Assembly: GCA_025594325.1 (NCBI GenBank)
Contig: JANHCV010000006.1
Coordinates: 744,001-808,000 of the forward strand
Origin: Blastocladiella emersonii ATCC 22665
Lineage: Eukaryota; Fungi; Blastocladiomycota
Length of the DNA stretch: 64,000 nt
Reading direction: 5' to 3'
Of the stretch, positions 1 through 28,997 are shown one piece after another; the first letter of the stretch is position 1, and every line of letters begins with the position of its first letter. A model generated the notes under the pieces. The model did no database searches. It was not told where the DNA came from and saw nothing but the letters and a program-made list of their open reading frames with translations. The translations under genes and the position numbers were made by a program.

Positions 1-1013
1 GACGTCATGCGCAGGTAGAACGAGTCCGGCGCGTCGGTGAGCACGGCGGGCACCTTGTGCGCCGCAATAAACGATGGGAAAACATGAAGCAATATGAAGT
101 TTGACATCGTAGAAGCCATCGTCAGAGTCGTGGCCGCGGACGGCATCCCCCTGGTCTCGGTTTGTCTGACGTCTTCTCCGAGTCTTCCGTTGCGCGAAGT
201 ATCAAACATCAAGGATATAGCCGTTTGCTACCTGTTGCGGTTGGCAGATGATGCTTTACACTTGTATGACGTTGACATCGATGCTGTGCCAACGCAAGAC
301 TGTTTGCAGCGCGAGCCACGCCGCGGGGGTTCCATTCCGCATTCAAGGCTCGCGCTTTGAAGTCGGCTCGATGACGTGAATCGTTGCGTGCGCACGTCTG
401 AATCTTGACCGATAGAGTGGGGGTACATATGGCAGGACCGAGTGGCCAAACCGGCAAACCAAGAAACCAAGCAACCAAGCGCGCGCCGCCCCAGCCCACC
501 GCCCCGCCGCAAAGGCCAGTGCTGCCTCGCCCGCTCCCCTTCTCGCTCCCTTCCTCGCTCCCCTCGCTCCCCCTTCGCTAATAAATTAATAACCATGCAA
601 TCTCGAATGTCGACGAACGCAGCCTACATCAGCGATGAGGATCTATACGCGCTCTATCGCACGCTCAGCACGCAGGCCGCCGTGTGCCAGAAGCTCCAGT
701 CTCGCTCGATTCTTCACTGATGTCAAACGTTGATCAACTTTCGACAGAGAGGCATCCCGACTCAACGCACTCGTGGAGCCCCCAACTCACTGATTCTGGC
801 GCACGCTGGACGCCGTCGCGTCCCGGACTCGATGGGCGCCTCACACATTCCGGGCACACTTTAAGACTGGGCGCTTGGGTTCGGGATTTGCAATTATGTT
901 ACGTTGCACCAAGTCGCTTGCAGTCTTTTAGGGTCGGGGCCCGTCAGAAACCGTTCGAAACGCGAAAGAACGCGAAGTGGCTCAAGCGTCACGTGTGTGG
1001 CGCGTCGCGTCGC

Positions 1014-1032
1014 GCAACGCGTTACGCGTTGC
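1014..1032. promoter_or_regulatory. Perfect palindrome GCAACGCGT-T-ACGCGTTGC with two ACGCGT (MCB-like) cores upstream of the IR gene
   Basis: Read directly at 1014-1032, ~100 bp upstream of ATG 1129; mirrored at 28674-28692. Function inferred from the ACGCGT MluI-box core. Confidence 0.45.
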
Positions 1033-1128
1033 AACGCTAGTTCCGTTGCAATCCACCGCCAATCACCATGCTCTCGATACCCAGAGGTTCTACGCAGGGG
1101 TGAACCACGGCAATCATGACGCAACGCG

Positions 1129-3411
1129 ATGCTGAAGCTCATGAAACGCGCAGCGCTCAGCCGTCGTCGCGAACGCGGCCTCCCAACTTGGTTGACGGAC
1201 CCCGAAGAGTGCGATTCAGACTTCAACAAGCAGTCGCAGTCGTCGGCGCGGTCCACCGTGTCGCCCAAGCCGGCAGCCAAGAAGTCGTCGCTGTTCTCAT
1301 CGTCGTCGCGCGCGCCCAAGGTCCCGCTCGCTGCCGTCCATACCCATACCCTCAACGTGGCTGCTGGCTCGGCCACGGCGGCGGCGGGCGCGGGCCCCGC
1401 GAAGCAGCGGTCGCCCATGGACCGCCTCGCGGCGTGCATCAAGACGGCGTTCGGTCGACTCGTCCCCGGCCGCAAGCGCGCGGCCAAGGCGGCCAAGATG
1501 GCCAAGACGGCGGCGGCTCAGGCTTCGGCTCCTGCTCGTTCGGCGTCCCCGGCCACCTCCATGGCCCGCCTCGCCAAGCAGCAGTCGACGTCGCAGCACC
1601 TGTCGGTCAAAAACTTGTACGTTGCACCGAGTTGTCACTGCTCTCGATACAGCGAATCCGACTGACACACATTCCTTCCCTCGCGTAGCACTACCTCCGC
1701 TACCACCACCTTCGGCTCGCGGCGCAGCAGCTGACGTGACAGCAGCAGTCTCGCGCTCGACGACGTCGAGGTGGTGGCGGCGGCGGCTCCAAGCCCAGCC
1801 GTCGCGTCGGTCTCGACGCCGCCGGCTGGCACAGCTTCCGAGGTCGGTACCAGTACCAGCGCCAGCTCCACGACGGCTGCGCAGGCCGACGGCGCTGGTA
1901 CCGATTTCGAGGACGAGGGGCTCGCCACCGAGTCGCTCGTGGCCACGGACCCGACGACCGAGATCCCGCTCCCGATCTCGTCGTCGCTCACGCCGGAGGC
2001 CGAGCCCAAGATCCAGGCGGTCGACCCGATCGCCATTATCGTCGAGGAGGATATTATGGAGGACGGCCCCGTCGAGGCCGTCGAGCGGGAGCGCCGCGAC
2101 TCGGGCGTCGCCGAGGACATTGCCCAAGGTGTCGCTGCGGCGCTCGCCGCCCAGCAGCAGCTCTCGGTCGAGCACCAGCAGGAGCAGTCGGCGGTCCAGC
2201 TGCAGCACCCGGTCGAACAGCAGGACGATTCGGTCCAGCAGCTCGAGGCGCTCATCGCGCCTACCACGACCGCGGTCTCGGAGCCCGAGCAGCTCGCCGC
2301 GGTCCCGTCGGTGCTCGCGCCGGCGCAGATCTCGGTCGTTGTCGACTCGGCGCCCGTGGCATCGCCGGCCGTCGCCGCGACCGAGATCCCCACCGCCGCC
2401 ACGTCGTCAGCCATCAGCCATGTCGTCCACGTCGAGGCGCCCATCGCGCCCACTACGTCCGCGGTCCCGAAGCCCGAGCTCGCCGCGGTCCCGTCGGTGC
2501 TCGCGCCCGTCCAGGTCTCGGTCGTCGTCAACTCGGCGCCCGCGGCATCGCCAGTCGTCGCCACGACCTAGATTCACGCCGGCGCCGCGCCGGCAATTAA
2601 CCAGGTCGTCGAGGTCGAGGACGGTCCGCTCGCGCAGTCGCCGGCCGTGGCGCGCCTGGCACACGCCATGCTCACGTTGCTCCGCGTGTTCCCGGCCACG
2701 GCGTCGCTCGCCCGCGCTCAGGCCAAGAACATCGCGACGCACCTCGCGCCGTCGCACCTCGCCGTCGACCTGTACAAGTACGCGTGGTCGAGCTCGGCCG
2801 CGCGCAAGTGCGGCACGTCGGGCCAGGTCATGCTCGCGACGCCCGTCAGCGTGTCGCGCACCCTGTGCCCGGTCGAGTTCGTGTGGTGGGGGTCGCGCCC
2901 GATCCCCGTGGCGCTGCTCCGTGGCACGACCGATGCCGAGAAGATGGCCGATACGACCAAGGTGACGATCGGCCAGCTGTACCAGTTCGTCGCGGCAGCG
3001 CTGCCCGACGACGAGCTCGAGCGGCTCGCGGTGCTCGACGAGGTGGCCGCCGCGTACCCGGCCCAGCTCAAGCCGCTCGCGCTCGTGCTCGGGTTCATGT
3101 TCCTCAAGGCCGGCAGCAAGCTTGCCGACGCCGTCACCAAGCTGCTCGCGCTGTGGTGGTTCGACGGCCGCACGCACCCCACCGTGGCACCGGGTGCGCT
3201 CGACACGGTCGGTGGCGAGCAGGCGTCCGACAAGATCAAGGCCGTGTGGCGCGAGCTGCTGGCGGCGGGCGCGCGCGAGTACCGCGACACGATCCGGACA
3301 GACTTCCTGACGCCGGCCGAGTTCATGCACGACAAGCGCACCGCGGACGACCCCGCGCTCGTCCGCGCAATGGCCAAGGCCAAGGAGACAAAGAAACCGG
3401 CCGAGCAGTGA
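1129..3411 (+). pseudogene. Two-exon gene of unknown function inside the left IR arm, interrupted by two in-frame stops
   Basis: Exon 1 1129-1616, intron 1617-1688 (GTACGT...CTGAC...TAG), exon 2 1689-3411 in one frame with TGA 1732-1734 and TAG 2569-2571. The three ORF-track pieces (1129, 1771, 2647) share this frame. Basic N-terminus, acidic A/P/V/T-rich middle, globular-looking C-terminus. Confidence 0.75.
2254..2574 (+). repeat. Two-copy internal tandem repeat (period ~186-189 nt) in the IR gene
   Basis: IAPTTTAVSEPEQLAAVPSVLAPAQISVVVDSAPVASPAVAATEI vs IAPTTSAVPKPE-LAAVPSVLAPVQVSVVVNSAPAASPVVATT*I. Confidence 0.9.
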
Positions 3412-3975
3412 TTGAATGAGTGGTGTCGATGATTTGTAAGCCCATTTTCCTAGTTTTGTTCGCCCATCCCATTCATTGTTGTCCGCATAGGTTGTTGTTT
3501 CGTTGGGCATCGGGGGCCATGGCCGTGGCGACGCCCGCCAGGCGACCGAGTAGTTTGTCCCTCACGTGCTGTACCATTCATAGTAGTAATCCAACTGTTC
3601 TTACGTTTCTCATGCTGCTCATGACCACCTTGAACTCGTGACTGCCGCGCGTCAATCCACACTCGGTTCAAAGCGAGAGGGAGAGATGGAGGCCAAGCCG
3701 CCGTTGACGCGGTTCGTGATGGCTCTGACCAGTCCGCCATCGTCAAGTAGCCCGTTCAGGGACTCTTCCTCGTCGGATGGCGGCTCAGCGCGCCCGAGGT
3801 GGGAGCAGGAATGCGTCACGGCAAGCCTGCGGACTCAACCGTGTCCGGTTGAGTCAACGGGGGTCGCGCGCCGCCACACGCACGCGACCCGTTTCGTCCC
3901 GCCACACTATAAAAGTCTCCACGCCGCCCGCTCCTCCCTCCCCGATCCCCACACAGTGCAACGTAATCAACAACC

Positions 3976-6483
3976 ATGGCCGACTCGCAAGTCCCTGCAA
4001 CTGCACCGGCTGCTGCCCCAGCACCCGCGCCGGGCACCGCCGCACCACCACCACCATCCGCCTCGGCGGCCAAGACGCCCCGCCCGCGTCCGCCGCCCAA
4101 GTGTCGCTTCTTCGCGCAGGGCAACTGCCGCGACGGCGAAAACTGCCGGTTCCGCCACGTTCTGCCCAAGCCCAAGCCGGCTGCTGTCGATGCCGCGGCG
4201 AACGGCGTGTCGGGCGCAACCGCCGGCGAGGCTGGATCGGCCGAACCCAAGTCGGCGGCACGCCGTCGTGCGCCCCGCAAGAAGGCTGATGCTGCGCCCG
4301 CGGCGACGGCAGAGTCGGGCGACGCGCAGCCTGCCGAGGGCCAGTTGGCCGATGCGCCCGCGCCGGCGTCAGCGAAGGCGCCGCGGAAGCGCGCGCCACG
4401 GTCGGCCAAGGGCAAGAACGCCGCGGGTGCACCCGCTGACGGCGCGGCGCCCACCTCCGACGCCGCTGCTGCTGCCAATGGTGACGCTGCGCCGGCGCCT
4501 AAGATCAAGAAGCGCAACCGGGTGCGCAAGGCCAAGGGCCCGTCCACCTCCGACGCCGCCACCCCACCGCCGCCGCCCCCGACGACGCCGCGCGAGATCG
4601 AGATCGCGGACCTGTTCGCGCGGTTCCCCAAATCGAAGCGCGTGACGGCGACGCGGATCCACGCCGTGTTCGCTCCGTCGGACCCGGACTTCCCGTGGCC
4701 GCTGCCCGAGATCGAGGTCGGGCTGACGGTCCCGCTCAACTACCCGGCGGGGCTCGGGTGCTCGCTCGAGGTGCTGACCGAGGACATCCCCGAGCACCTG
4801 CGCGACACGGTGGCGCGCGGCGTGGCGCAGCGGCTTGCGCAGCGCCCGCCGCTCACGCTGGCGCAGGTCGTCATGTGGATCGACAAGAACCTCGAGGCGC
4901 TGCTCTCGGGCAAGCTCGCGACACCCGCATCGACACTCGTGTTTGTCCGTCCCGGCGCAGCGAACCGCGAGGCGCAGGCGCGGCCCACGGGTCCCGCGGC
5001 CGGCCGCGACACGGAGGTGCGCGCGCTCGAGCGCCGGTTCCGGTCGTCGTGGGTGCAGCTCGACCAGACCGAGTTCCAGTTCACGCTCGTCCCGACGGAC
5101 CCGGACCTGCCCTACGCCGTCGAGCTGCACCTCGCCGTCACGGTCCCCACGGCGTACCCGGCGCCCGACGCCCGCGGCGAGTGGCGCCTCCTCAACACGG
5201 ACGTGTCGCCGCTCCTCGCCGCCCGCGTCCAGGACGCGCTCCGCGAGCAGAACTCGGCGCTCACGCTCCTCGCGACCGCCAACTGGCTCGACCGCAACCT
5301 CCTGGCGATGATCCAGACGCTCGAGGCCGAGCAGGAGGCCGCTCTCGAGGCTGCGTCGGCCGAGTCCGAGTCCGAGTCCGAGTCCGAGTCTGACGACGAC
5401 GAGTCGGGTTCGTCGACGGACGAGGGCGAGCATGTCCACGACGGCGAGTGCGACCACGACCACGCCGAGGACGACGACGAGGCGACGACGGGCACGCCAT
5501 CGTCCGCGCAGCTCGAGGTGCCCAAGTCGGGCGCGACGCAGATCCGGCTTCCCGACCTGCAGCTGTCGAACGTGGGCGTGGTCGAGTGCACGTCGCTGTC
5601 GGTGCTGGTCCGGTGCGTGCGGTGCAAGCACGGGACCGAGTTCCTGGACGTGGCGCCGGTGCCCAAGGGCCAGTCGCTCGAGTGGCAGCTGGGCGCGTCG
5701 TCGGGGGTCCGTCCGTGCGGCAACTGCGCGGCGCCGCTCGGGGTGCGGTGGGTGCCGACGCTGATGCACGCGAGCCACCCGCTGGTCGGGTACGCGAGCC
5801 TGCTCAACGGCACGCTGCTCGACCTGCTGCCGAGCTCGTTCGCCGTGACGTGCGGCAACTGCTCAACGGGGTCGGCCGACTCGGCGTTCCGGCGCGTCGC
5901 GCGGTCGGCCACCCCCGCGCGCCACAACTGCCGCAAGTGCCACAAGGCGGTCAGCATGACGGTCGACGGGGTCCGGTTCCTGCGCGTCGGCAGCGGCGGG
6001 CTGGTCACGGGCGGGGCGCCGCTCGCCATCGCCAAGAAGAAGCGGCGGTCGCCCGCCGACGAGGGGATCGTGCCGGGGCAGCCCCTGCCGCGCAGCGGGC
6101 GGTGCGCGCACTACTCCAAGTCGTACCGGTGGTTCCGGTTCCCGTGCTGCGGGCGCGCGTACCCGTGCGACGTGTGCCACGAGAACGAGAAGCCCGACGA
6201 CCACGCCATGGTCCGCGCCAACCGCATGGTGTGCGGCCACTGCTCCAAGGAACAGCCCTTCTCGCAGGCCCCCTGCGCCTTCTGCCACGCGTCGCTCGTC
6301 GCCAAGCCCAGCAGCGGGTTCTGGGAGGGCGGCAAGGGCACCCGCGACACGTCGCGCATGTCGACCAAGGAGAAGAAGAAGCATGCGGGCCGCAACAAGA
6401 CGGTCTCCGCCAAGGCCGAGCGCGTCGGCGCTGCGGGCGCGGCTAAGCGCAAGAAGAAGGCTGATGGGAGCGATTCGTCGTGA
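3976..6483 (+). CDS. CCCH zinc finger / tandem RWD(UBC)-like / CHY zinc finger protein, 835 aa
   Basis: CRFFAQGNCRDGENCRFRH (CCCH); two DPD[FL]P[WY]...TVPxxYP RWD-like units; several CxxC pairs; C-terminal CAHYSKSYRWFRFPCCGRAYPCDVCH...CGHCSKEQ (CHY). TATAAAA at 3908-3914. Confidence 0.85.
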   Translation: MADSQVPATAPAAAPAPAPGTAAPPPPSASAAKTPRPRPPPKCRFFAQGNCRDGENCRFRHVLPKPKPAAVDAAANGVSGATAGEAGSAEPKSAARRRAPRKKADAAPAATAESGDAQPAEGQLADAPAPASAKAPRKRAPRSAKGKNAAGAPADGAAPTSDAAAAANGDAAPAPKIKKRNRVRKAKGPSTSDAATPPPPPPTTPREIEIADLFARFPKSKRVTATRIHAVFAPSDPDFPWPLPEIEVGLTVPLNYPAGLGCSLEVLTEDIPEHLRDTVARGVAQRLAQRPPLTLAQVVMWIDKNLEALLSGKLATPASTLVFVRPGAANREAQARPTGPAAGRDTEVRALERRFRSSWVQLDQTEFQFTLVPTDPDLPYAVELHLAVTVPTAYPAPDARGEWRLLNTDVSPLLAARVQDALREQNSALTLLATANWLDRNLLAMIQTLEAEQEAALEAASAESESESESESDDDESGSSTDEGEHVHDGECDHDHAEDDDEATTGTPSSAQLEVPKSGATQIRLPDLQLSNVGVVECTSLSVLVRCVRCKHGTEFLDVAPVPKGQSLEWQLGASSGVRPCGNCAAPLGVRWVPTLMHASHPLVGYASLLNGTLLDLLPSSFAVTCGNCSTGSADSAFRRVARSATPARHNCRKCHKAVSMTVDGVRFLRVGSGGLVTGGAPLAIAKKKRRSPADEGIVPGQPLPRSGRCAHYSKSYRWFRFPCCGRAYPCDVCHENEKPDDHAMVRANRMVCGHCSKEQPFSQAPCAFCHASLVAKPSSGFWEGGKGTRDTSRMSTKEKKKHAGRNKTVSAKAERVGAAGAAKRKKKADGSDSS

Positions 6484-6759
6484 TGATCTGATCTAATACA
6501 GTCGTGTGTATTCCTGTCCAATTCTCGGCTTTCTTGATGGCGAAGCGATAGGGATGGAGGGGAGGAGTCGACGCGTGCCGCGTTGCTCACGCGATCGCCG
6601 GCCCGCGCGGATCAGCGGGCCGGAGCGCCGCGCGCAGCGAGACCTCAAAACGCGCGACTCGCCCCGCCCGCCATCCGCGCTCTCCCCAGCTGCCTGCACA
6701 GTAATACACGCCGTATCATCCTGCAGCCAGCAACCGCAACAACCCCACGCATCAACACC

Positions 6760-8413
6760 ATGCTCCGCACCGCGCTCGGGTCCGCCCTGCTGGCGGTCCT
6801 CGTCGCGACGCTCGCCAGCGCGTCCCCGCTCGACCCCGCGGCCGAGTCGCCGCTCCTCTCGGCGCAGACGGCCAAGCCCATCCCCGGCCACTACATGGTC
6901 GTGCTGCGCGACGACGCCGACGCCGCCCACGTCGCCGACCACCACAACTGGCTGTCGTCGTTCCTCGCCACCCCCGGCTCGCTCCGCGCCTCGTCCAAGG
7001 CCAACCGCATCAAGCACGTCTACGACCTGCCCGGCGTCAAGGGCTACGCCGGCGTGTTTGACGACGAGGCCGTCGCGGCCATTCGCCGCGCCAAGCACGT
7101 ACGACTTTCGTGTGTCTCGGATGGGATGACGCGTTGGTCACCGCGCCGCCGCCGCCGCGTGTTTCACCGTTCCGCTCACTCATCCCCAACCCTCATCCTC
7201 CGGACCCGTTCAGGTCGCCTACGTCGAGCAGGACCAGATCGTCACCATCGCCGCTGACTACCACACGGCCAAGCGCAAGTACGTGACGCAGCGCGACGCG
7301 CCGTGGGGCCTGTCGCGCATCTCGCACCGCACGCGGCCCTCGGCGGCGCACTACAAGGAGTACCCGCACGCGGCCCTGGCGGGCGCCGGCGTCTCGGTCT
7401 ACGTCATCGACACGGGCATCAACATTGCGCACCGCGACTTCGAGGGCCGCGCCCGGTGGGGCGCCACGATCCCCGAGAACGACGAGGACGAGGACGGCAA
7501 CGGCCACGGCACCCACTGCGCCGGCACCATCGCCGGCAAGCGGTTCGGCGTCGCCAAGCACGCGTCGCCCGTCGCCGTCAAGGTGCTCGCCAGCAACGGC
7601 GCCGGGTCCATGTCCGACGTGGTCAAGGGCGTCGAGTGGGCGGTCCAGGACCACAAGCGCCGCACCAAGAAGGACAAGAACGCCAAGTCGGTTGCGTCCA
7701 TGTCGCTTGGCGGCGGCAAATCCGCCACGCTCGACCGCGTCGTCAACGCCGCCGTCGACGCGGGTATCCCCTTCAGCGTAGCCGCGGGCAACGAGTCGCA
7801 GAACGCGTGCAACGTGTCGCCGGCGGCCACCGAGAAGGCCGTGACGGTTGGGGCGAGCACCATCGACGACAAAATGGCCTCCTTCAGCAACCACGGCAAG
7901 TGCGTTGACGTGTTCGCGCCCGGCAAGGACATTCTCAGCACGTGGATCGGCTCGGACGTGGCCACCAACATCATCTCGGGCACGTCCATGGCCGCGCCGC
8001 ACGTTGCCGGTCTCCTCGCCACCCTCGCGTCCGAGTCGGCCGAGCCCGTCGCGCCCAAGGAGCTCAAGGACCGCCTCATCGCCCTCTCGACCAAGGACGT
8101 GCTCTCGGGCCTCCCCAAGCCCGGCCAGGGCGGCGGCGGCATCGCCAAGCCCCCCGGATGGCCGTTCCCCTGGCCGTTCCCCGGCGGCGCCAACCCCAAC
8201 GAGGGCACCACGCCCAACCGCCTCGTCTTCTCGGGCGTCAAGTCCAAGGCTGACGACAAGGAGGGCGAGCAGGGCGAGGAGGAGGAGGACACGCTCCGCA
8301 TCTACCCGATCGCCGCCGACGACGAGGACGAGATCGCCGCGCCCCACGCGTCCATCGTCTGGATCCGCCACACCATGCACCGCGTCCGCGGCCGCATCAC
8401 GGGCTTCTTCTGA
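6760..8413 (+). CDS. Subtilisin-like serine protease (S8A, proteinase B/K type) with signal peptide and I9 propeptide
   Basis: Signal peptide MLRTALGSALLAVLVATLASA; intron 7099-7213; catalytic motifs VYVIDTG, DGNGHGTHCAG, AAGNE, ISGTSMAAPHVAG. Confidence 0.95.
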
Positions 8414-8557
8414 GGGTGACGGAGTTGGTGTTGAGTTTGTGTATCGTCAATCTGTATCATCATACACGTGAATATCATTTGACTTTGGTCCGCTCCGCGG
8501 TCGCTGGACGAGCGAGGATGAAGTGAGATCACGACTCGCTGCGGCGCCGCCACGGAA

Positions 8558-8578
8558 TCGACGCGTTGCGCCACACCG
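8558..8578. repeat. 21-bp non-coding element TCGACGCGTTGCGCCACACCG, exact second copy at 11143-11163
   Basis: Identical 21-mers ~80-110 bp beyond the stop codons of both tandem F-box-like paralogs. Confidence 0.8.
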
Positions 8579-8660
8579 ACTCGCCATCACAGCTCGCAAC
8601 AATAGAGAGTTTATGCGCGAGTCAACAGTATAACAAGTCACACGAAACACCAGTTCGCGT

Positions 8661-11041
8661 TCAGCGGAGCTCGCAATACGCGAGGAGGTACTCGTCCGTG
8701 CTGCTCTTCACGAGCGAAAGCCGCCGCATCTGCGCTGCGCCCGCGTGATCGCCGACGCGCTCGTACGCGACCGTCAGCTGGGCGAGCCACCTCGGATGGA
8801 CGACGGGCCGATCAAATGCAGCGCGAGGCAGCAGCTCCAGGATCGCGAGCGGGATCCGGCCGCGCGTGTACGTCAGCACCTCGACCACGTCAACGACTTT
8901 GAACTCGAGAAACGTCCGCCAGAGCTCGAGCTCGGGGAACGCGACGTGCTGGGTGCCGCACGACGAGGCGATCCGCGTCCGCAGGCGGAGCTCGAGCGCG
9001 TCGTGGCCCATCCCGTCGCATCCGCTGTTCCCGAGCGAAGCAAGCAGCTTGTCGCGGACGGACTTCGGAATCGGCGCGTTCTGTGTGCAGAGGCGGTGAA
9101 GCTCGGACACGGCCACGAACCATGCCGGTTGGGTCGAGGGTGCGCACGCGCCGCATGTCCGTTCCGCGAAGCTCAACTCGAGCGCGTAGCGCCCAACACG
9201 ATCGTTGAGTTGAGCGCGGATCATGAGGTTAAGCAAGTCCAGCGCGGTCCCCGAGTCAGTCAGGTGCTGGAGCGCGTTCGGCCGCAGCGATGAGTCCGCC
9301 AGGACCGCGACCGGGATCCACTCGAGCCCGGCGAACACAGATTCGGTCCGAAGTTCGGCGCGGAACCGCTTGATTGCTGCAGTGAAGAGGAGGAACACCG
9401 GCCATGCGTCGATGGTGGGCTGGAACGCGAACCGGCTCGCGAGAAAGTCCCACATGCTGGTTCCGTCGAGCTGGTGCAGCAGCTGGCTATGGATGTGGAC
9501 GTCCCGACTCGGAGTGACCTCGAAACAAGTGAGATTCAGGGGCGGATTCGCATAGCGACTGGCGCATTCTTCCATCGCAGTTGAGAGCACCGCGGCCAAC
9601 AAGGTGGGGAAGTAGTCGGACGCGAAGCGGATGACGTAGAGCGCTCGATCCCACGACTTGAAGCTGAGCCGGAATGCTGGAAATCGGTGGAGGAGCGGCA
9701 TGGTTAGTGCTTGTCCGCGTGCAAGGATGTGCGGAGATGCGTACCCTGCGTCAGGACCTGCGTCAGACCGTTCGAGTCAAAGTTGCGATGAATCTCGGTC
9801 GCGAACGCAAGCGCCGTATCCTCGTCGAGGTGAAGCAGCGAGGGAAGAAAGTGGGTCGAGACACCTTCGATTTCCCCGATGACGCGCAACATCTTGACTG
9901 GATCGGGAGGGCTCGAGTGTGCTAGCGCATCGAAAATAGTCATGGCGTGGAACGCGACTGACATTCGAGCCATGGCGGCCGTTCCGTGACGATCCAAGAT
10001 ACGGGTGAACATGTCCTTACATGTAGTCAGAGGACTAGAATCGGTCGGCGGCGGCTCGTTGGAGTCGTTGGTCGCCCACCCGTGGTCGAAGAGCCATTGC
10101 ATCGAATCAAACACGCGGCCGAGCGCGGAGTGATCCGATGGGAGCGCACGCAACATGGCGCCGGCCACGGCGGGTGTCGAGGCGATGACCGCGAGCCAGC
10201 GGGCGCTTGCGTCGGGACGCAGACTCGCAAGAACTCGATAGATGTTGACATCCCATCGAGAGAGCGCGATGTAGCACAATGCGAGGTGAAGAGTAATGGG
10301 TGACCCGGCTGGCAGGAAATCGAGCGAGAAAATCGTTGGCTCGACGCAGCACGACTTCCACTCGCTGACCGGGAGCGCCAAGTAGAGAATTGCGGGCGAG
10401 CGCGACGAAACAGCTGCGAGCAGCCGAGCAAGACTTGCATGGTCGCCTCGATTGACAAGATAGAGTAGGACCTGGACGAGCGAGAACAAGGGTGTCGCGA
10501 GACAGGTGGCCCTGCTGGGAAAAGGAGGCTTCCAAGCGTCGGGGACGGTGGTCGGGATAACATAAAAACTGGCCGAGTACGACAGCGGGAGCTGGATCAG
10601 CTCCGTGGCGATCAATTGCGAGGCGCGGGCGCCAAGCTTGCGGACGACGAGTACCGAGTGGTCGAGAAACACTTCGCCAAGCGCTACGAAGAAGGCATTC
10701 GACTGCCGCTCGTCGGTTGCCAGTGGAACATCAAGTCGATGCTCCAGGTACGGTCCCAGCATCAAGACCCAGAGATCGTTCAGGCGCAACGGATAAAATC
10801 CGTAGTGGTACGAAGGGATCCACTTGGCGGCGCATTTGCTGGAAAAGAACGTTTTCAATCGAGCTTCGAAGACTGATGGAAGGTGAGCCCAGAGGACGCG
10901 CCGGTCTGCGACAAGGGCGCTCAACTCGCGCGAGGACGTGAACACGGCCGACCGCCGCTCGGCCAGCTGGACGACCGCGGTCCATAATTCGCAAGGTAGC
11001 GGAGAATTCATGAGTACAAAGTGTTGCAATAAGTCATTCAT
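8661..11041 (-). CDS. Lineage-specific protein (~770 aa) with N-terminal F-box-like motif; paralog A
   Basis: ORFs 9704-11041 and 8661-9701 join in frame via intron 9677-9744 (GTACGC...CTAAC...CAG, phase 1). N-terminus LPCELWTAVVQLAERR..VFTSSRELSALVADRRVLW fits the F-box pattern LPxE(L/I)W...SRxLxxL..D..LW. Confidence 0.75.
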
Positions 11042-11271
11042 GGTCTATGAGTGCATTTTTGCTTCGTTTTGGAGAGGCAGAGAACGCGGGAGCGACGTTC
11101 TCCTTGTCGCGTCTCCCACGCGGGTCTCAGCTGACAAGCGCGTCGACGCGTTGCGCCACACCGCGCCAAAATCACCACGATCACGACCACGACCATCATC
11201 ACGAAAATCAAACCAAATCTATGGAAAAATCAATGAAACAACAATCAGAACAAAAAGAATCAAGTTTGTGC

Positions 11272-13930: not shown

Positions 13931-14288
13931 GATGGTTATCGATTCATGTCGAGCCGGTGGAGGACGAGGGAGAGCGGATCGCACGCGGGCTGCCTTCTCC
14001 GCCGACTTGGCACCTCCCTCCGCACTCACCCGCTGTCTCACGGCCTGTCTCACGGCTGCTCTATCCTCGTGTATTGGATCTGATCCTGCTTGGGCAGGGA
14101 AAGCAGGAGACGAAGGCAGGAGACAAAAACCAGCGTTCCGCACGCTCGGGGTGGCTCGGGACGCGCCGTCAAGCGCCACGTGATGGTGCATCGCGACATC
14201 GCGACGCGACGAGCCCGCCAAGGTTGCGCTCCCCACCCTCGACGCATCTGCAACGTATCGACACCACGACTTGCCGCATCTTGCTGTT

Positions 14289-15957: not shown

Positions 15958-16058
15958 GATCCGCAAGAGTTTTGCGCGCACTTTGGCTCGATCGGCAAAT
16001 GTATACCCACACTTGAATGAATGAAATAACGGCAAATCTATCAGCAGCAAGACTGGGC

Positions 16059-19000
16059 TCAATCGTCGCCATCCTCGTCGTCTCCCGCCTCGTCGTCCTC
16101 GCCATCGTCCTCGTTGCTCGAGGCGAGCTGGGCGCGGCGGCGAGCCTGCACCGCCTTGTTGCGCAGGTCGAGCGACACGATCAGCCACGCGTACACGGTC
16201 TGCGCCGGGAGACTGCCGCGCTTCTTGACATCGCCGTGCGGAATCGCTACACAGCAGACGGGTCGGGTCAGCGCCGGTTCAGGACAAGGCAGGGAGCGAG
16301 GTCGCGCCTACTGTTGAGGACGCGGCGGATGCGGACAAATTTGCCCTTCTTCTGCACGGCCGTCGGGTCGTAGGCAACCATCTGGCGCAGGAGGTCCATG
16401 TTGATGAACTACAGGGACGAGAACAAGCGTGAGCTGGGCGCGCCGCCGCCTCCGCGAGCGACGGAATCGCGTACCTTGAGCGTGTCGCTCCACTTCTTGA
16501 CCTGCTTGGGCGTCTTGCCGAACAGGTAGCACAGGCACTTGAGGACCTTGTGGATGGTGAGGGGCGGCTGCTTGTACGACTTGAGCTCGGCGATGGCCGA
16601 CGAGTCGAGCTTGCTGATCGAGTCGCGGATCGTGTCGAGCATGAACTTAGCGAAGATGAGCTCGCCCTCGTCGTCGAGCTGCTCGGCCTCGAGCTCGGCC
16701 TTTCGCGGCTTCTGCTTACGCACGTTGCCGAGCGCGTTCCCGAGCACCTCAGCCACCTTGTTGACCTCCTCCATGTCCTCCTCCTGCATCGCGCCGCCGG
16801 CCTGCGCGAGCGACGTGACGACCATGACGGCGACCACGAGCCCGTTGTCCTGGACGGGGACCGCGGTCGCCTGGCCGCGGATCGACGTGGACCGCGACTC
16901 GGCCGCGCTGAAGATGAAGTCGGTATCGGACGTGCGCTCGACGCGCATCAGCTGGTGGCGCAGCGGGCGCATGAACCGGCACGGGTGCTGGTTCATGCGC
17001 TCGAGCTGCTCCTCGCTCAGCGTCTTCTCGACCGAGTTGGCCTCCTCGTTGGCGAAGTACATCTCGGCGCCCTCGACGACGTAAAACCGCGTGCTGGCCG
17101 AAGCCTGCTCGCGGATGAACGACGCCGAACTCTCGGCGATCGTCACCGTCTTGTTGATGCGCTCGAGCACCGCCACAGCCTTGGCGAGCGACTCGGCCAT
17201 GCGGCGCAGAATGTCAATGTCGCGGTCGGTGAACATGTCGACGTCGCGCGTCGTCGCCAGCGACTTGGTCAGCGCCATGGACTGCAGCGCGTCGACGTGG
17301 ATGCACCCGAGCACCTCGCCGACCGCCGTCTTGACGGGGACCACGACCGCGTGTCCGACGTGGAACTCGTTGACCATGGGCATCGCTGTCGTTGTCGTGG
17401 CCGCCGGTCCGTCGCTCCCGTCGGACCCGTCGCCGCCCGCGCTGTTGCCCGACGCGTTGAGCCCGTGGTGCGGGTCGCGCTGCGCCTTAAGGTCCTGCTC
17501 GGCGCGCGCGCGGGCTGCCTCGGACAGCTCGTCGAGTGCGCCGTCGACGGCCTCGAGGGCGACGCACGACACCTCCTCGCCGGCCTGCGCGACGGCGCCG
17601 AACACGTCGCCCTGGAGCGTGTCGCCGACGAGGATCGCGTCCGACGATGCCATGACGGTGAAAGCGCGGTCGAAGAGGGCGACGTTGAGGCGAAAGTGCC
17701 CGTGGGTCATCTTGAGCAGCTCCATGGCGGGGCGCACGAGCTTGCTGCACAGGACCTGGTAGTCGAAGAAGACGGTGGTCGCGACCTTCTCGATATCGGC
17801 GAGCAGCTTCGCCTCGCTCTCCTTGGGCCCGCGGGTTGCGGACGCTTCGGGCGCCGATGACGCGGTGCGCGCGCGGTGCTGGTCGCTGAGTGTACGCAGG
17901 ACGAGCCCGAAGTCGGCGTCGTTGAGGTGCGAGATCTTGCGGAACACGTAGTCGACAAAGTAGTCGCCGCGCACGACGTGCGTCGCGAGGTTGAGGACGG
18001 GGATCGCGAACTTGAGCTGGACCACCGTGTTGGCGAGATCCGCGCGGTCGATGGCGCGCGCCGACGCCGTGAACAGCGAGTTGAGCTCGCGCGCCAGGAT
18101 CGCGCCCGTCGCCTCCGGGTCGAGCTGGTCGAACAGGCCCTTGATCTTCTGCTTGCGCACCAGGCTCATGTCGATGACCTCCTCCTCCTCCTTTTCGGCG
18201 TCCTCGGTCCCGGCCGGTGCCGCGGCGATGAGGTCCTTGGCGTCGTTGTTGGCCGACTTCTGCAGCATCGTCACGAGGTCGCCGATGCTCATGACGGTGC
18301 GACCCGCGACCTTCTTGAGCATGGCGCCGAGCGACTCGTCCGACGCCTTGGTCAAGTTCATGCCGCGCATCTCCTTGAACAGCTCGTCGTCGCCGCCCTC
18401 GCCACCGGCACCGCCGAACAGACCCGCGAACCCGCTTGCCGCCGCGGCGGCGGGGTCGGCCGGAAATAGCTGGTCGAACGACGTGAGCCCCTTGGCGCGC
18501 AGGACCTGGATGAGGTCCGCGACCTGCCGGTCCTCCTCGGCGCGCGCCTCGCCGTCCATCCACAGCGTGATCTCGGTTAGGAACGCCTCGAAGTCGGCGG
18601 GCGTCCACTTGGACAGGAGGTCCGAGACGCGCTCGATCAGGGCGGCGGGGTCCTGGTCTGCTGCACCGTCGCCTCCGGCGGCAGGTGCCGCCGACTCCTC
18701 GCGCTGGCTCAGGTCCATGAGCGACTGGCTGAGCTCGGCCATGGACGCGGTGAGTGACGCGTTGATGCTGACGGCGGGCGACTGGCCGACCTTTTGGAGG
18801 ACCGAGAGCTACAGGAGCGGCTCATTGTCAGCGATACGTTGCGAGATTCAGCGGCCCGGTCGCGCGTACCAGGTACTTGAGGTTGATGGGCTCGTCCTTG
18901 CGGCCGAGCGCCATGAGCCGCCGGAACACGGCCGACGTGAGCTCCTTGGTCGTCTTCTTCTTCTCCTCGTTGGCGAGTTGCTATTCGACAAGCAAATGTC

Positions 19001-19828
19001 AGTCTCCTTCAACGCAACCCCGAAACGAGAGCGTACCTTGATCAACCTGCGGTGCTCCCGATCGCGGTCACGCGCAGCGCGCTCGGCCTTGAGCTGCCCG
19101 ATGCGCAGCTCCTGCAGCTTGGCGAAGCGGTTGCTCAGGGAGCCCGAGATGTTCTGCAGGTTGCGCGCGTACGCCGACGACTGGCCGAGCGCCGAGTACT
19201 TTGGGTTGTGGCGGAACATGAACTGCGCGAGCCACACGAGCGGGTCGAAGGGGACCGGGAGATGGTCTTGCTGCACGACGCGCGACGTGCCCGCGCGGCT
19301 CGGCGGCGGCCGCGACGCGGACGCGGGTGGTGGTGGCGCGTCGCCGGGCGTGCCGGGTGGACCCGTGGCCGCGGCAGCTGCTGAAGCGGGGTCAGCGGGC
19401 GGCTCGAGGATGCGTTTCCGCTCGACCTCCTTGAGCAGCCGCTCGAGTCCGAGGACGACGGTCGGGAGCGTGGATCCGACGAGGTACGCGCGCGCCTCAA
19501 GCGACGCGCCCGGGTCCTGCGAGAACTGGAGGAACTCGTTGACGAGCGCGTCGACCGACACGGCGCGCGCCTGCTGGTCCGTCAGCGTGGCGACGCTGGG
19601 CTCGCGCATCGTGAGCGAGTGGGTCCGCGACATGGACGCCGCGGCGACAGCGTGGACGTCGCGGTCCATGAGCGCGCCAGGGCTCGCGCTCTTGGCGCGC
19701 AGCTGGAACCGGTCTTTGGACGGGCTCGACTTGAGCGGGGCCGCGTCGCCGAGCGCGCTGCGGAGGGCCGTTCGGGCCGGCGACGGGCTTCCCGGCGGCC
19801 TTGCGGGTGGTGCATCATCCGATATCAT
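16059..19828 (-). CDS. EFCAB5: EF-hand calcium-binding domain-containing protein 5-like (EF-hand-like plus GAF-like regions; flagellum-associated family)
   Basis: N-terminal LPTVVLGLERLLKEVE...FDPLVWLAQFMFRHNP; GAF-like VVVPVKTAVGEVLGCIHVD; C-terminal AIAELKSYKQPPLTIHKVL...W. Four GT-AG introns restore a single frame. Confidence 0.8.
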
Positions 19829-20051
19829 GGCGAGGGTTCCGTTAGGTGCATGGTTTTGTGCGGGCAAGCAGGCTTCAGCGCGGACGACCGAACGCGTCAG
19901 TGTGGCGCGTCGCGTGGTCACGTTTCGGGAGACAGTCTCCGGTTGAAGCCGACATTGACGACAGCGTGATACGTTGCCATGCTCAAGAAACCACATGCAG
20001 ATCCCTCGACAAGAGATCGACTAGACGCAAGCTGATCAGAAGTGCTAATGG

Positions 20052-22500
20052 ATGGAGAACCGGGTCCTTGTATTATACAAACCGCAACTATCGAGCGAAC
20101 GAGCGACTCGCTGACCTCGATCGGTCGTCTAGGTGGCGATCAGGGTGCGCCCGATGGGCACCGTGCAGGAACGCTACGTCGCGACCGTCCACGACGAACG
20201 TGTACGCGACAACACGAACGGCTGCCTCGGAACCACCCTCACGCACGCGATCTCGTCACTTGTTTAGACTCTCAAGCTCTACAACCCGTTCGACGAAGAT
20301 GACGTGCTGCGCCAGAACCGGGCGCGGGAGAAGCTGTTCGCGTTCGACCGCGTCTTCGACGACGGCGTGACGCAGCAGGGCGTGTTCGAGCAGACCGCCG
20401 CGCTGCTGATCGAGGATGTGGTTAACGGGACCAACGCGACCGTGTTCGCGTACGGCGCAACGGGCTCGGGCAAGACGTACACGATGCACGGCACCGAGGC
20501 GTGCCCGGGGATCGTGCCGCAGACGCTGTCCGCGCTGTTCCAGCGGCTCGCGGCGTCACCGGAGCGGCTGACGGTCGCCATGAGCTACATCGAGATCTAC
20601 AACGAAAACGTGCGCGACCTGCTCAGCGCGACGCGCACCGAGTACCTCGAGGTCCGCGACGACCCCATCAAGGGCACCGTGATCGCGGGTATGCGGCAGA
20701 TCGAGTCGGACTCGGTCGACGTGCTCCTCGGCCAGCTCAAGGCCGGCAACCGGCACCGGATCACCGAGTCGACGGCGGCCAACTCGGTCTCGTCGCGGTC
20801 ACACGCCGTGGTCCAGGTACGCATGCGTCGCGTTGGCGACGCGGCTCAGACACTGACTTTGTTGCATGTAGCTCGCCCTGACCAAGACCCACGCCGAGTC
20901 CAAGAAGCGCACGCTGATCAGCAAGCTCTCGCTCATCGGTACGCTCGATTTTACTTTCTCGCAACTCAAGACCTCACCACGACCTCGCGTAGACCTTGCC
21001 GGGTCCGAGCGCGCCGCCGCGACGCAAAATGCGGGCCTGCGGATGCTCGAGGGCAGCATGATCAACCGTTCCCTCCTCGCGCTGGGCAACTGCATCAACG
21101 CACTCTCCTCGCGCGTCGCGCCCGCGTACGTCAACTACCGCGACTCGAAGCTGACGCGGATCCTCAAGGACTCGCTGGGCGGCGGGCTGACGGCGTGCCG
21201 GACCGTGATGATCGCCAACATCAGCCCGGGCTCGACGTCGTTCGACGAGACGTGGAACACGATCAAGTACGCGGCGCGCGCCAAGACGATCAAGGTCAAG
21301 ATCGACGTGCGCGTGACGAGCGACCCGGACGGCGCCGCTGCGGAGGTGCGCACGCTCGGGTCGCGCGGCAGCGGGAGCCACCGGTCCAACCGGTCCGCGT
21401 CCGGGTCGCTGTCCAAAGTCGCGGTCCCGGCGGCGGCGAGCACGGCCAAGCGGAAAGGCCTGTCGCAGCTCCTCGGCGGCCGCGCGTCCAAAGAGCCCGC
21501 GCCAGCTCCCAAGGAGCTGCGGCCGCCCAAGACCCCGAAGCCCGGCCCGCACCAGCACCCGCCGCTCATGCCGCTGCGCCGCACCGAGAGCGACCCGACG
21601 AGCAAGATCCCGCACCCGCACGGTATGCGCCCGCCCGCGACGCCGGGGCACGCCGCGAGCACGGGCGCCATGGCCACCTCGCGGCACTCGAGCGGCGGGA
21701 CCGTTCGCGGCGGATCAACTCTGCTCGGGCTCAGCAGCAACGGGGCCGTCGGCGGCGCGACGCGGCAGATGGCGCTCAAGAAGAAGCTGCACAAGCTTTT
21801 CCAGTCGCACCTCGACACGAAGCGGCGGCTGCTAGACCTCGACGAGCTCGCCGCCGAGCGCGCAGCGCTGCTGACCCAGCGACACGCCGAGCTCGCTGCT
21901 GCGCGGGCCGCGCCTGACGGAAACGACCCGACGGCGCTCGCTGCGCTCGAGGCCGAGATCCACGAGCTCGAGTCGCGCGACGCCGAGGCCGCGCTGACCC
22001 GCACGTCGCTGGCCGCGCAGCTCGCGGGAATCTCGGCTCGCGTGATCGCCGTCGAGGACGAGGTCCAGGGCAAGCTGTCGCTGGTCGACACCGAGTTCCT
22101 GCGTGCGCTGGTCGCGCACCACGCGCTGGCGCTCGACAACATGGACCTCGAGAGCACGGCGGTCGTCACGGCGGCCGTGGTCAAGCGCAAGGAGGACCAG
22201 GTGCGGTTGCTCGAGGCGCGCGTCGCGCGGTACCACCGGCTCGCTGAGATGCTGTACGCGGCGGTGCCGATCGACGCGATGCCGGCTGAGGCGAGCGCGA
22301 TGTACCTGCAGCTGCGCGAGGAGGCGGTGCGGAGCGACGCCGGCGCGCGGCTCGGGTCGGCGGTGAGGGTGCTGCCGGCCATCGAGCCGGCGCTACCGCT
22401 CCTCGCGCGTGCATCGCCAAGGGCGCGACGAGCCGCCCAGAGTCCCACGACGGCGCCGGTGCTGGACGCCGGCCCGCTGCCACCCATTCCACCCGAATAG
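20052..22500 (+). CDS. Kinesin-8 family motor (Kip3/KIF18/KIF19-like)
   Basis: MENRVL|VAIRVRP; P-loop [13 protein letters not shown]; [10 protein letters not shown]; LSLI|DLAGSER; [15 protein letters not shown]; [16 protein letters not shown]; C-terminal coiled coil. First intron 20070-20132 plus three further introns. Confidence 0.93.
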
Positions 22501-22558
22501 ACAGACACGAAAGATGTATCACACAAGAGAAGAGTCTGTATTACACAGGCACGGCCGC

Positions 22559-24628
<2,070 letters not shown>

Positions 24629-24800
24629 TCATTGCAGGGAGAGACGAAGGTGGCCGCGACCGCCCCGCGGCGACTCCGACCGCCCCGCATGGAGCGCGAG
24701 GGGAGCGGTGCGTGAGGCGCACACTTTCATGCCGATCCGTGGGCGATCGAGCGGGTCGGCGGTCGGGCAGCTTCAGATTCATCCGGCGCGCTGACGGAAG

Positions 24801-24831
24801 GCGCAACGCGTCGTGAGAGCGCGCAACGCGT
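24801..24831. promoter_or_regulatory. Two direct copies of GCGCAACGCGT, 20 bp apart, in the carB/XPA divergent promoter
   Basis: 24801-24811 and 24821-24831 read directly; ACGCGT core; ~130-160 bp upstream of the XPA ATG. Confidence 0.5.
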
Positions 24832-24959
24832 GATCGTGATGCCTCACGTGCCCCTGCGAGACACTCGCCGATTTCCGCGCCGGCCCGCTCGCTGACTCGA
24901 TCGCCCCGTTCTCCGCTCCCCGCTCCCCGCTCTTCCTCAGAGAATAAAGCACCACTAAC

Positions 24960-26047
24960 ATGTCATCAACACCCAATGCAAACACTGGCGGGCCGTCCGC
25001 AACGAGCGGCGCTGCGGGAGCCGCGCCGCGGCGGCAGCCGAACCTGCTCGCGTCGGTCCGCAGCTACCCGGCACCACCACCACCGCCCGAGGCTGGTGCG
25101 AGTAGCAGCAGCGGGACTCGGGCTGCTCGCCCTCAGCAGAATACCAACGCGCCGAGTGGACCGGGCATCGCGCCCGGCGGGAACGGACCAGCGGGCGCAG
25201 CGCCGAACCCGAAGAAGCGCTCGTGGGTCTCCAACTACTACGAGTACAACTTCACCGAGATGCAGGACTCGCGCGCCGGCTTCCTCGTCAATGAGGGCGG
25301 CGACGACGATGCTTCCGCTGCACGCCTCGCGGCCGAGGCGGAACGGGCCGCGAAACGGCAGCGCCGTGTTTACAATGATGCTCGTACGTCACCGCACTCA
25401 TCTCGTCCGCGCTGCGAACCGACGTTCGCTGATTTTGGATCGTGATAGCCGTCCCACTCGACCCCGACTTTGCGCCCAAGTGCGTCGAGTGCAGCTCGCT
25501 CGACCTCGACAAGCGCTACGTCGAGCACTTTGACGTCAACGTGTGCTGGGCGTGCAAGGAGAAACTGCCCGAGAAGTACGCGCTGCTCACCAAGACCGAG
25601 GCCCGCCAGGTGCGCCTCGCCCGTGCTCACCCCATCCTCCCACGGATCGCTAACTCGATCCTCGCGTAGGACTACCTGCTGACCGAGGAGGAGCTGACCG
25701 TGGTCGGCAACTTCAAGGCGTGGCGCAAGCCGAACCCGCGCAAGAACACGTACCACGACATGTACCTGTACCTGCGCGGCGAGATCGAAAAGTACGCCAT
25801 CGAGAAGTGGGGCAGCCTCGACGCCATGGACGCCGAGTACGCGCGCCGCGAGGACGACAAGGTCAAGCGCAAGGAGGCCAAGTTCAAGAAGAAGCTCGCC
25901 CAGCTGCGCAACGCGACCCGCACGTCGCTGTGGGCCGAGCAGGAGGAGGCCCACGTCCACGTCTTCAAGCCCGCCGAGGACAAGGAGGGGTTCGACGTGT
26001 GCGAGGGGTGTGGGATGCAGGTCGAGGTCAATATCATCGAGCTTTGA
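24960..26047 (+). CDS. XPA: Nucleotide excision repair damage-recognition protein XPA/Rad14
   Basis: CVEC...CWAC zinc finger; KYALLTKTEARQ|DYLLT; KPNPR..Y.DMYLY; IEKWGS; C-terminal HVHVF...CEGCG. Introns 25384-25448 and 25610-25669. Confidence 0.95.
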
Positions 26048-26116
26048 GCCTTTGACTGACGCTGAGCGAGATGAGAGAACAGACGAGTCGATCAGAGGAA
26101 CGCAAAAAAAGATGAT

Positions 26117-28997
26117 TTACAACTATGAATGGTACAGAACATGAAGGACAAACTACTCGGTCGCCTGGCGGGCGTCGCCACGGCCATGGCCCCCGATGCC
26201 CAACGAAACAACAACCTATGCGGACAACAATGAATGGGATGGGCGAACAAAACTAGGAAAATGGGCTTACAAATCATCGACACCACTCATTCAATCACTG
26301 CTCGGCCGGTTTCTTTGTCTCCTTGGCCTTGGCCATTGCGCGGACGAGCGCGGGGTCGTCCGCGGTGCGCTTGTCGTGCATGAACTCGGCCGGCGTCAGG
26401 AAGTCTGTCCGGATCGTGTCGCGGTACTCGCGCGCGCCCGCCGCCAGCAGCTCGCGCCACACGGCCTTGATCTTGTCGGACGCCTGCTCGCCACCGACCG
26501 TGTCGAGCGCACCCGGTGCCACGGTGGGGTGCGTGCGGCCGTCGAACCACCACAGCGCGAGCAGCTTGGTGACGGCGTCGGCAAGCTTGCTGCCGGCCTT
26601 GAGGAACATGAACCCGAGCACGAGCGCGAGCGGCTTGAGCTGGGCCGGGTACGCGGCGGCCACCTCGTCGAGCACCGCGAGCCGCTCGAGCTCGTCGTCG
26701 GGCAGCGCTGCCGCGACGAACTGGTACAGCTGGCCGATCGTCACCTTGGTCGTATCGGCCATCTTCTCGGCATCGGTCGTGCCACGGAGCAGCGCCACGG
26801 GGATCGGGCGCGACCCCCACCACACGAACTCGACCGGGCACAGGGTGCGCGACACGCTGACGGGCGTCGCGAGCATGACCTGGCCCGACGTGCCGCACTT
26901 GCGCGCGGCCGAGCTCGACCACGCGTACTTGTACAGGTCGACGGCGAGGTGCGACGGCGCGAGGTGCGTCGCGATGTTCTTGGCCTGAGCGCGGGCGAGC
27001 GACGCCGTGGCCGGGAACACGCGGAGCAACGTGAGCATGGCGTGTGCCAGGCGCGCCACGGCCGGCGACTGCGCGAGCGGACCGTCCTCGACCTCGACGA
27101 CCTGGTTAATTGCCGGCGCGGCGCCGGCGTGAATCTAGGTCGTGGCGACGACTGGCGATGCCGCGGGCGCCGAGTTGACGACGACCGAGACCTGGACGGG
27201 CGCGAGCACCGACGGGACCGCGGCGAGCTCGGGCTTCGGGACCGCGGACGTAGTGGGCGCGATGGGCGCCTCGACGTGGACGACATGGCTGATGGCTGAC
27301 GACGTGGCGGCGGTGGGGATCTCGGTCGCGGCGACGGCCGGCGATGCCACGGGCGCCGAGTCGACAACGACCGAGATCTGCGCCGGCGCGAGCACCGACG
27401 GGACCGCGGCGAGCTGCTCGGGCTCCGAGACCGCGGTCGTGGTAGGCGCGATGAGCGCCTCGAGCTGCTGGACCGAATCGTCCTGCTGTTCGACCGGGTG
27501 CTGCAGCTGGACCGCCGACTGCTCCTGCTGGTGCTCGACCGAGAGCTGCTGCTGGGCGGCGAGCGCCGCAGCGACACCTTGGGCAATGTCCTCGGCGACG
27601 CCCGAGTCGCGGCGCTCCCGCTCGACGGCCTCGACGGGGCCGTCCTCCATAATATCCTCCTCGACGATAATGGCGATCGGGTCGACCGCCTGGATCTTGG
27701 GCTCGGCCTCCGGCGTGAGCGACGACGAGATCGGGAGCGGGATCTCGGTCGTCGGGTCCGTGGCCACGAGCGACTCGGTGGCGAGCCCCTCGTCCTCGAA
27801 ATCGGTACCAGCGCCGTCGGCCTGCGCAGCCGTCGTGGAGCTGGCGCTGGTACTGGTACCGACCTCGGAAGCTGTGCCAGCCGGCGGCGTCGAGACCGAC
27901 GCGACGGCTGGGCTTGGAGCCGCCGCCGCCACCACCTCGACGTCGTCGAGCGCGAGACTGCTGCTGTCACGTCAGCTGCTGCGCCGCGAGCCGAAGGTGG
28001 TGGTAGCGGAGGTAGTGCTACGCGAGGGAAGGAATGTGTGTCAGTCGGATTCGCTGTATCGAGAGCAGTGACAACTCGGTGCAACGTACAAGTTTTTGAC
28101 CGACAGGTGCTGCGACGTCGACTGCTGCTTGGCGAGGCGGGCCATGGAGGTGGCCGGGGACGCCGAACGAGCAGGAGCCGAAGCCTGAGCCGCCGCCGTC
28201 TTGGCCATCTTGGCCGCCTTGGCCGCGCGCTTGCGGCCGGGGACGAGTCGACCGAACGCCGTCTTGATGCACGCCGCGAGGCGGTCCATGGGCGACCGCT
28301 GCTTCGCGGGGCCCGCGCCCGCCGCCGCCGTGGCCGAGCCAGCAGCCACGTTGAGGGTATGGGTATGGACGGCAGCGAGCGGGACCTTGGGCGCGCGCGA
28401 CGACGATGAGAACAGCGACGACTTCTTGGCTGCCGGCTTGGGCGACACGGTGGACCGCGCCGACGACTGCGACTGCTTGTTGAAGTCTGAATCGCACTCT
28501 TCGGGGTCCGTCAACCAAGTTGGGAGGCCGCGTTCGCGACGACGGCTGAGCGCTGCGCGTTTCATGAGCTTCAGCATCGCGTTGCGTCATGATTGCCGTG
28601 GTTCACCCCTGCGTAGAACCTCTGGGTATCGAGAGCATGGTGATTGGCGGTGGATTGCAACGGAACTAGCGTTGCAACGCGTAACGCGTTGCGCGACGCG
28701 ACGCGCCACACACGTGACGCTTGAGCCACTTCGCGTTCTTTCGCGTTTCGAACGGTTTCTGACGGGCCCCGACCCTAAAAGACTGCAAGCGACTTGGTGC
28801 AACGTAACATAATTGCAAATCCCGAACCCAAGCGCCCAGTCTTAAAGTGTGCCCGGAATGTGTGAGGCGCCCATCGAGTCCGGGACGCGACGGCGTCCAG
28901 CGTGCGCCAGAATCAGTGAGTTGGGGGCTCCACGAGTGCGTTGAGTCGGGATGCCTCTCTGTCGAAAGTTCGTCTACGGTTGACATCAGTGAAGAAT
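26117..28997 (-). repeat. Right arm of the ~2.9-kb inverted repeat
   Basis: Reverse complement of 709-3589. Confidence 0.97.
26295..28577 (-). pseudogene. Second copy of the stop-interrupted IR gene
   Basis: Mirror of 1129-3411; same TGA (27972-27974) and TAG (27135-27137). Confidence 0.75.

Follow-up and report, generated by a model that had tools for sequence, protein, structure and literature searches.

The stretch analysed here (hereafter the window) comprises 64,000 nucleotides, positions 744001-808000, of contig JANHCV010000006.1 (NCBI assembly GCA_025594325.1) of the zoosporic fungus Blastocladiella emersonii ATCC 22665. It contains 0 N and lies mid-contig, at 744 kb of 2.02 Mb. Near its start, a block of ordinary genes is enclosed by two inverted copies of a 2.9-kb sequence, each of which carries a copy of the same gene, and it is the origin and the likely consequences of this inverted repeat that concern us. 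A repeat search of the window placed the two arms at 709-3611 and 26095-28997, each 2903 nt long and 99% complementary to the other, with 22,483 nt between them. The features from which the argument proceeds are the following:

709..3611, + strand: left arm, with diverged edges at 709-735 and 3561-3611
1129..3411, + strand: left copy of the arm gene, a single reading frame with a G+C content at third codon positions (GC3) of 0.88-0.95
3612..26094, no strand: interior, 22.5 kb of ordinary complete genes (from Pfam and the annotated genes)
26095..28997, - strand: right arm, with its core at 26146-28970, collinear across both of its boundaries with a third copy on the same contig (C3, described below)
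26295..28577, - strand: right copy of the arm gene, in the mirror frame and with identical stops

When the arms were compared base by base, position i being paired with position 29706-i, a core of 2,825 bp (736-3560 on the left, 26146-28970 on the right) showed 0 mismatches, a perfect match that cannot be due to chance. This core is framed by short diverged edges, with 4 mismatches in the outer edge (709-735; 23/27 matching) and 11 in the inner edge (3561-3611; 40/51 matching), corresponding to 78-85% identity, and beyond both edges the left-right pairing fell to a random level. An earlier note on this DNA had drawn the arms at 709-3589 and 26117-28997; they are indeed inverted copies, with inner limits that it set 22 nt short of the true ones (3611 and 26095), and the identical 2825-bp core that it described was confirmed. 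No target-site duplication was found, as the bases outside 709 and those outside 28997 differ. Together with the lack of any Pfam domain in the arm gene, this agrees with the note's further statement that no transposase or target-site duplication was found.

The reading frame of the left arm gene is interrupted by in-frame stops at 1663 (TGA), 1732 (TGA) and 2569 (TAG), all of them mirrored in the right copy. The annotation presents the left copy as a 695-aa protein (1141-3411), with introns placed over the stops, and the right copy as one of 682 aa, in a model that extends to 29723 in the outer flank. A search of the C-terminal 254 residues against 1.84 billion representative proteins returned four matches, all from B. 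emersonii; the arm gene belongs to an orphan family seen in this species only. A scan with the arm protein of a genome collection confined to bacteria and archaea gave no hit and, given that scope, carries no weight. At codon 1732, the paralogue in C3 has TGC (Cys) where the arms have TGA, and the three codon positions contribute about equally to the differences that separate the arm from the paralogue (68, 60 and 67). The arm gene looks like a decaying copy, with the same lesions in both arms. Within the gene there is also a 119-nt direct repeat (2291-2595, mirrored at 27111-27415), whose two copies are 85% alike and lie at a spacing of 186 nt; the second of them contains the stop at 2569.

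The ATCC 22665 assembly was made from PacBio HiFi reads (SRR19593111; mean length 10.5 kb, 6.4 Gb in total, about 186x) with Illumina polishing (PMC9730499). Reads of 10.5 kb can cross a whole 2.9-kb arm and reach unique sequence at either end, which means that the order assembled around the arms is not guesswork. To this we added the Logan k-mer contigs of four public runs, all from one sample, which is that of the assembly and not an independent isolate, compared with window positions 1-6000. In run X1, probably the HiFi run, contigs in the flanks of the core (64-457, 490-765, 3531-5348 and 5404-6000) had a word depth of 146-157, compared with 273-393, or 1.9-2.7x the flanks, for contigs within the core (1230-1608, 1685-1955, 2478-2763 and 2734-3500). 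The excess over 2x plausibly stems from words held in common with C3, which is 97% alike in 2801-3560. The contigs break at 765 (735+30) and at 3531 (3561-30), exactly where 31-mers would cease to be unique if the core is shared. In run X3, one contig enters the arm from the right outer flank; its loose end matches, in reverse complement, the bases that follow 28997, and all four edge differences are present in it at the outer junction of the right arm. The raised core depth and the exact contig breaks show that both copies exist. A duplication of one arm in assembly, which had been named as a possible refutation of the note, is rejected on depth, breaks and junctions alike.

The closest paralogue of the arm gene (KAI9178983.1; P0001) belongs to the third copy, C3, about 200 kb further on the same contig, where the arm gene is followed by a convergent XPA_C fragment gene. 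By blastn, C3 (L003 7978-12927) is collinear with the window from 29788 down to 25444, an interval that contains a coding sequence on the same strand as the right arm gene and upstream of it (29073..29751, - strand; here called R), the right arm itself, and the 3' end of the XPA gene (25660..26080, + strand), which comes to within 15 nt of the right arm's inner edge. Identity to C3 in this alignment is 86.3% for R, 87.9-92.3% for the arm and 92.3% for the XPA 3' end; for the arm, the full range of values is 88-97%, with 97% in 2801-3560. This collinearity identifies the ancestral unit as [R gene, arm gene, convergent XPA 3' part]. The right arm is part of a complete unit, which runs on into the whole XPA gene (24960-26047), and both limits of the inverted repeat are breakpoints of the left copy only. 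Because the right arm is collinear with C3 past both of its ends, the arm ends are not element ends. A composite transposon or an element with terminal inverted repeats was rejected on this collinearity and on the lack of a transposase and of a target-site duplication.

R itself contains two in-frame stops and a poly-G run. R and the arm gene have in common that their nonsense codons occur without frameshifts and that high third-position GC is kept; the public gene models cover the stops with introns. On the left side, a homologue of R (R') forms an open reading frame (ORF) of 289 aa, located 2.0-2.7 kb before the window start and collinear in order and orientation with the left arm; R and R' can be aligned as coding sequence in one frame. 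Between R' and the left arm lie 2.7 kb of sequence that neither the right copy nor C3 possesses. R' is 72.6% identical to R and 73.7% identical to the copy in C3, compared with 86.3% between R and C3. The grouping by similarity is accordingly discordant along the unit: R joins the right copy with C3, whereas the arm joins left with right and leaves C3 as the outlier. In the short edges, all three copies are 78-93% alike.

The left side also holds an inverted 421-nt copy of the XPA 3' end, 93.8% alike, at 3.6-4.1 kb before the window start (L001:1964-2377; window -4061 to -3648). A chimeric XPA_C/HAUS6_N gene model, situated left of R', contains this copy, which begins at the equivalent of 26080, a point 15 nt from the arm's inner limit. 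With X' for this fragment and A for the arm, the left side thus has the cyclically permuted order X'-R'-A in place of R'-A-X', and its three parts have very different identities. Either a tandem duplication or a circular intermediate could produce this permuted order.

An identical core, edges of ~80% and a neighbour of 73% within what should be one duplicated segment is the kind of discordance that marks gene conversion. We consider it likely that the locus is an old inverted segmental duplication whose 2.8-kb core was recently overwritten by gene conversion from arm to arm. Structurally it amounts to a short palindrome whose spacer measures 22.5 kb. On this account, the ancestral unit of R gene, arm gene and convergent XPA 3' end would have stayed intact on the right and in C3, the left copy being a fragment of it, and homologous recombination between the arms would have replaced 736-3560 while the edges and the neighbouring R were left diverged. 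The right arm was probably the donor, a tentative assignment that we make because the core, 90-97% alike to C3, resembles the right-hand figures more than the 73% found for R'. The same recombination, if it ended in a crossover, would turn the 22.5-kb block round, as a passive and rare event. The data show two real copies, an identical core with decayed edges and similarities that disagree between segments; which arm was the donor, and that inversions take place, is what we infer. The mechanism that the evidence supports best for the locus is concerted evolution of an inverted segmental duplication, in which passive inversion may occur.

Three points weigh against this interpretation. The edges are short, and they do not make the left copy clearly older (67/78 matches between left and C3, 70/78 between right and C3); the donor direction and the age of the event are therefore weakly supported. 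The differences between arm and C3, scored with no outgroup, comprise 60 strong and 45 weak, a bias towards GC that is not significant (p = 0.17), so recurrent biased conversion is not shown and a single recent event would do. Finally, the permuted XPA fragment on the left is not explained by the model.

A second inverted pair from the same orphan family (KAI9179263.1 and KAI9179244.1; P0002 and P0005) is found on the same contig, at contig positions 1814108-1818842 (L004:9995-14729) and 1761180-1765914 (L005:10226-14960). Its arms are 4,735 bp long and differ by 2 mismatches and no gaps, the spacer measures 48.2 kb, and the genes point outward. Beside the arm there is an older homologous block of 78.6%, displaced by ~4.9 kb in one copy. 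This pair repeats the pattern of near-identical arms next to an older block and therefore counts in favour of conversion.

One and the same recombination can end either in conversion or in crossover. Since the identical core indicates that the arms recombine with each other, a crossover between them would invert the block. Non-allelic homologous recombination (NAHR) between palindrome arms is known to yield both conversion and inversion of the spacer (PMC8327919), and an occasional inversion of 3612-26094 is therefore to be expected. Such an inversion would be silent locally and alter nothing there: the interior genes would keep their own promoters and upstream regions, the diverged inner edges would move along with the block, and XPA would once more terminate beside an arm of the same sequence. 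For the same reason the words at the junctions are identical in both orientations, as the inner edges move with the interior and the outer edges stay, and k-mer contigs are blind to orientation.

A passive inversion polymorphism, in which mitotic crossover would have brought both orientations into the ATCC 22665 culture at a share above about 1%, gains from the evidence that the arms recombine and from the spacer inversions of mammalian palindromes, put at ~50% between species and at 18% in one human polymorphism (PMC8327919). With arms as short as 2.8 kb and an asexually propagated organism, the expected share is low, and we regard such a polymorphism as unlikely.

The core with 0 mismatches might also be read as a very young 2.9-kb inverted duplication that involved no gene conversion. 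A fresh copy should end abruptly, but here 27 nt and 51 nt at 78-85% flank the core, and a 73% homologue of the neighbouring gene follows in collinear order past a 2.7-kb insertion. Zero differences in 2,825 bp are incompatible with edges of ~80% and a neighbour of 73% in one young duplication, which leaves conversion as the simplest account. The edge homology and the collinearity of R and R' led us to reject recent duplication without conversion, and we give it little credence.

The interior, whose gene list in the earlier note stands when set against Pfam and the annotated genes, contains the following (all from Pfam and annotation):

3976-6483, + strand: zf-CCCH/zf-CHY protein gene
about 6583-8413, + strand: I9+S8 subtilase
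8661-14416, - strand: ORFs with no assigned identity
about 14289-15957, + strand: NIPA
from about 16059, - strand: EFCAB5_C/GAF (EFCAB5-like)
about 20304-22500, + strand: kinesin
up to about 24400, - strand: amine oxidase, carB-like
24960-26047, + strand: XPA (XPA_C)

A far-reaching possibility is that dozens of B. emersonii gene blocks between homogenised inverted repeats flip appreciably in the life cycle, that a culture is a structural mosaic, and that orientation at this locus alters the genes at the edges, XPA/carB or the CHY zinc-finger gene. We hold this to be very improbable.

The note had taken the block for a candidate flip-flop segment. Of this proposal, the recombination holds, in that the identical core shows arms that do recombine, and a crossover between them would turn the block round; for a flip-flop system there is no support. 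In such a system, regulated recombination between the arms would invert the block and a position effect would act on the genes near one end, as happens at MAT, the mating-type locus of Ogataea polymorpha. The geometry is certainly yeast-like, with identical kb-scale inverted repeats around ~20 kb, and the identical core means that the arms interact. Yet there are no paired cassettes of alternative regulators, the two ends of the interior being occupied by the CHY zinc-finger gene and by XPA, and no MAT-type domain (HMG, homeodomain or alpha-box) was present in any interior ORF scanned with Pfam. No silencer, centromere or telomere could be recognised beside the arms, in a species whose centromeres are not defined. 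The gene within the arms has nonsense codons common to both copies, the HiFi assembly gives one contiguous orientation, and the other inverted pairs in the genome make a general duplication process likelier than a dedicated device. A programmed flip-flop is thus unsupported and very unlikely, and the locus seems to have arisen as a side effect of duplication and gene conversion, not as a dedicated switch. Inversion by a site-specific recombinase of the Hin/Gin or FLP kind was likewise rejected, as the Pfam scans found no recombinase, integrase or transposase domain in the ORFs scanned in and beside the locus.

Least probable of all is an artefact in which the assembler duplicated one arm, for although near-perfect repeats are a classic source of such errors and the assembly authors took out duplicated contigs by hand (PMC9730499), it is rejected on the core depth of 1.9-2.7x, on the presence of both outer junctions and the left inner junction in the run contigs, on edges that are unlike between the arms, and on arms that are spanned by HiFi reads.

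The flanks include an unannotated stretch and a gene with stops, and no telomere, rRNA or tRNA was found in them; Rfam and tRNA scans of the window returned nothing. In the left outer flank, the ORFs yielded no Pfam domain. The same flank contains a perfect direct repeat of 36 bp, with one copy at window 58-93 (+ strand), in the 2.7-kb stretch between R' and the left arm, and the other 1.5 kb before the window start (L001:4453-4488), at a spacing of 1,630 bp. The two copies bracket a minus-strand ORF of 521 aa with no Pfam domain at E up to 0.01. Further along the window, at 41887-42472, there are tandem-like direct repeats in six overlapping copies of ~160 nt, with spacings that are multiples of ~51-57 nt.

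As a single locus, the palindrome is of little weight; it illustrates cleanly how inverted paralogues evolve in concert in an early-diverging fungus. The genome-wide pattern of inverted duplications may deserve more attention than this one instance; it suggests that inverted duplication and intrachromosomal gene conversion are unusually active in B. emersonii, which is not known to have a sexual cycle.

Among known systems, the flip/flop loci of the yeasts Ogataea and Komagataella resemble the locus in their identical ~2-3-kb inverted repeats around ~20 kb and in homologous recombination as the mechanism of inversion. In Ogataea polymorpha, two identical repeats of 2 kb enclose 19 kb that carry MATa and MATalpha at opposite ends; whichever cassette lies nearer the centromere is silenced by it, and starvation for nitrogen sets off the flip (PMC5720833). 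For the MATa/MATalpha cassettes, the silencing centromere or telomere and the induction by nitrogen starvation, no counterpart was found in B. emersonii, and whereas both orientations are known in the yeasts, only one has been assembled here.

The palindromes of mammalian sex chromosomes (human Y P1-P8 and those of the primate X; PMC8327919, PMC8600007) likewise have inverted arms with a gene family and a unique spacer. Their arm identity, maintained by intrachromosomal gene conversion, lies far above that of surrounding or paralogous sequence, and NAHR can invert the spacer. They differ in scale, with arms of tens to hundreds of kb against 2.9 kb here, where the spacer is eight times the arm length, and in setting, as ours is an asexually propagated zoosporic fungus and the locus is not on a sex chromosome; the arm gene looks decayed instead of preserved, and GC-biased conversion was not detected. 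The inverted segmental duplications behind recurrent inversions, neutral or pathogenic, in the human genome (for example FLNA-EMD and the int22h repeats of factor VIII; PMC8327919) belong to another organism, and inversion is demonstrated there and a possibility here. Like the arms described in this study, they are kb-scale repeats homogenised by conversion, which act as substrates of NAHR without a regulatory purpose.

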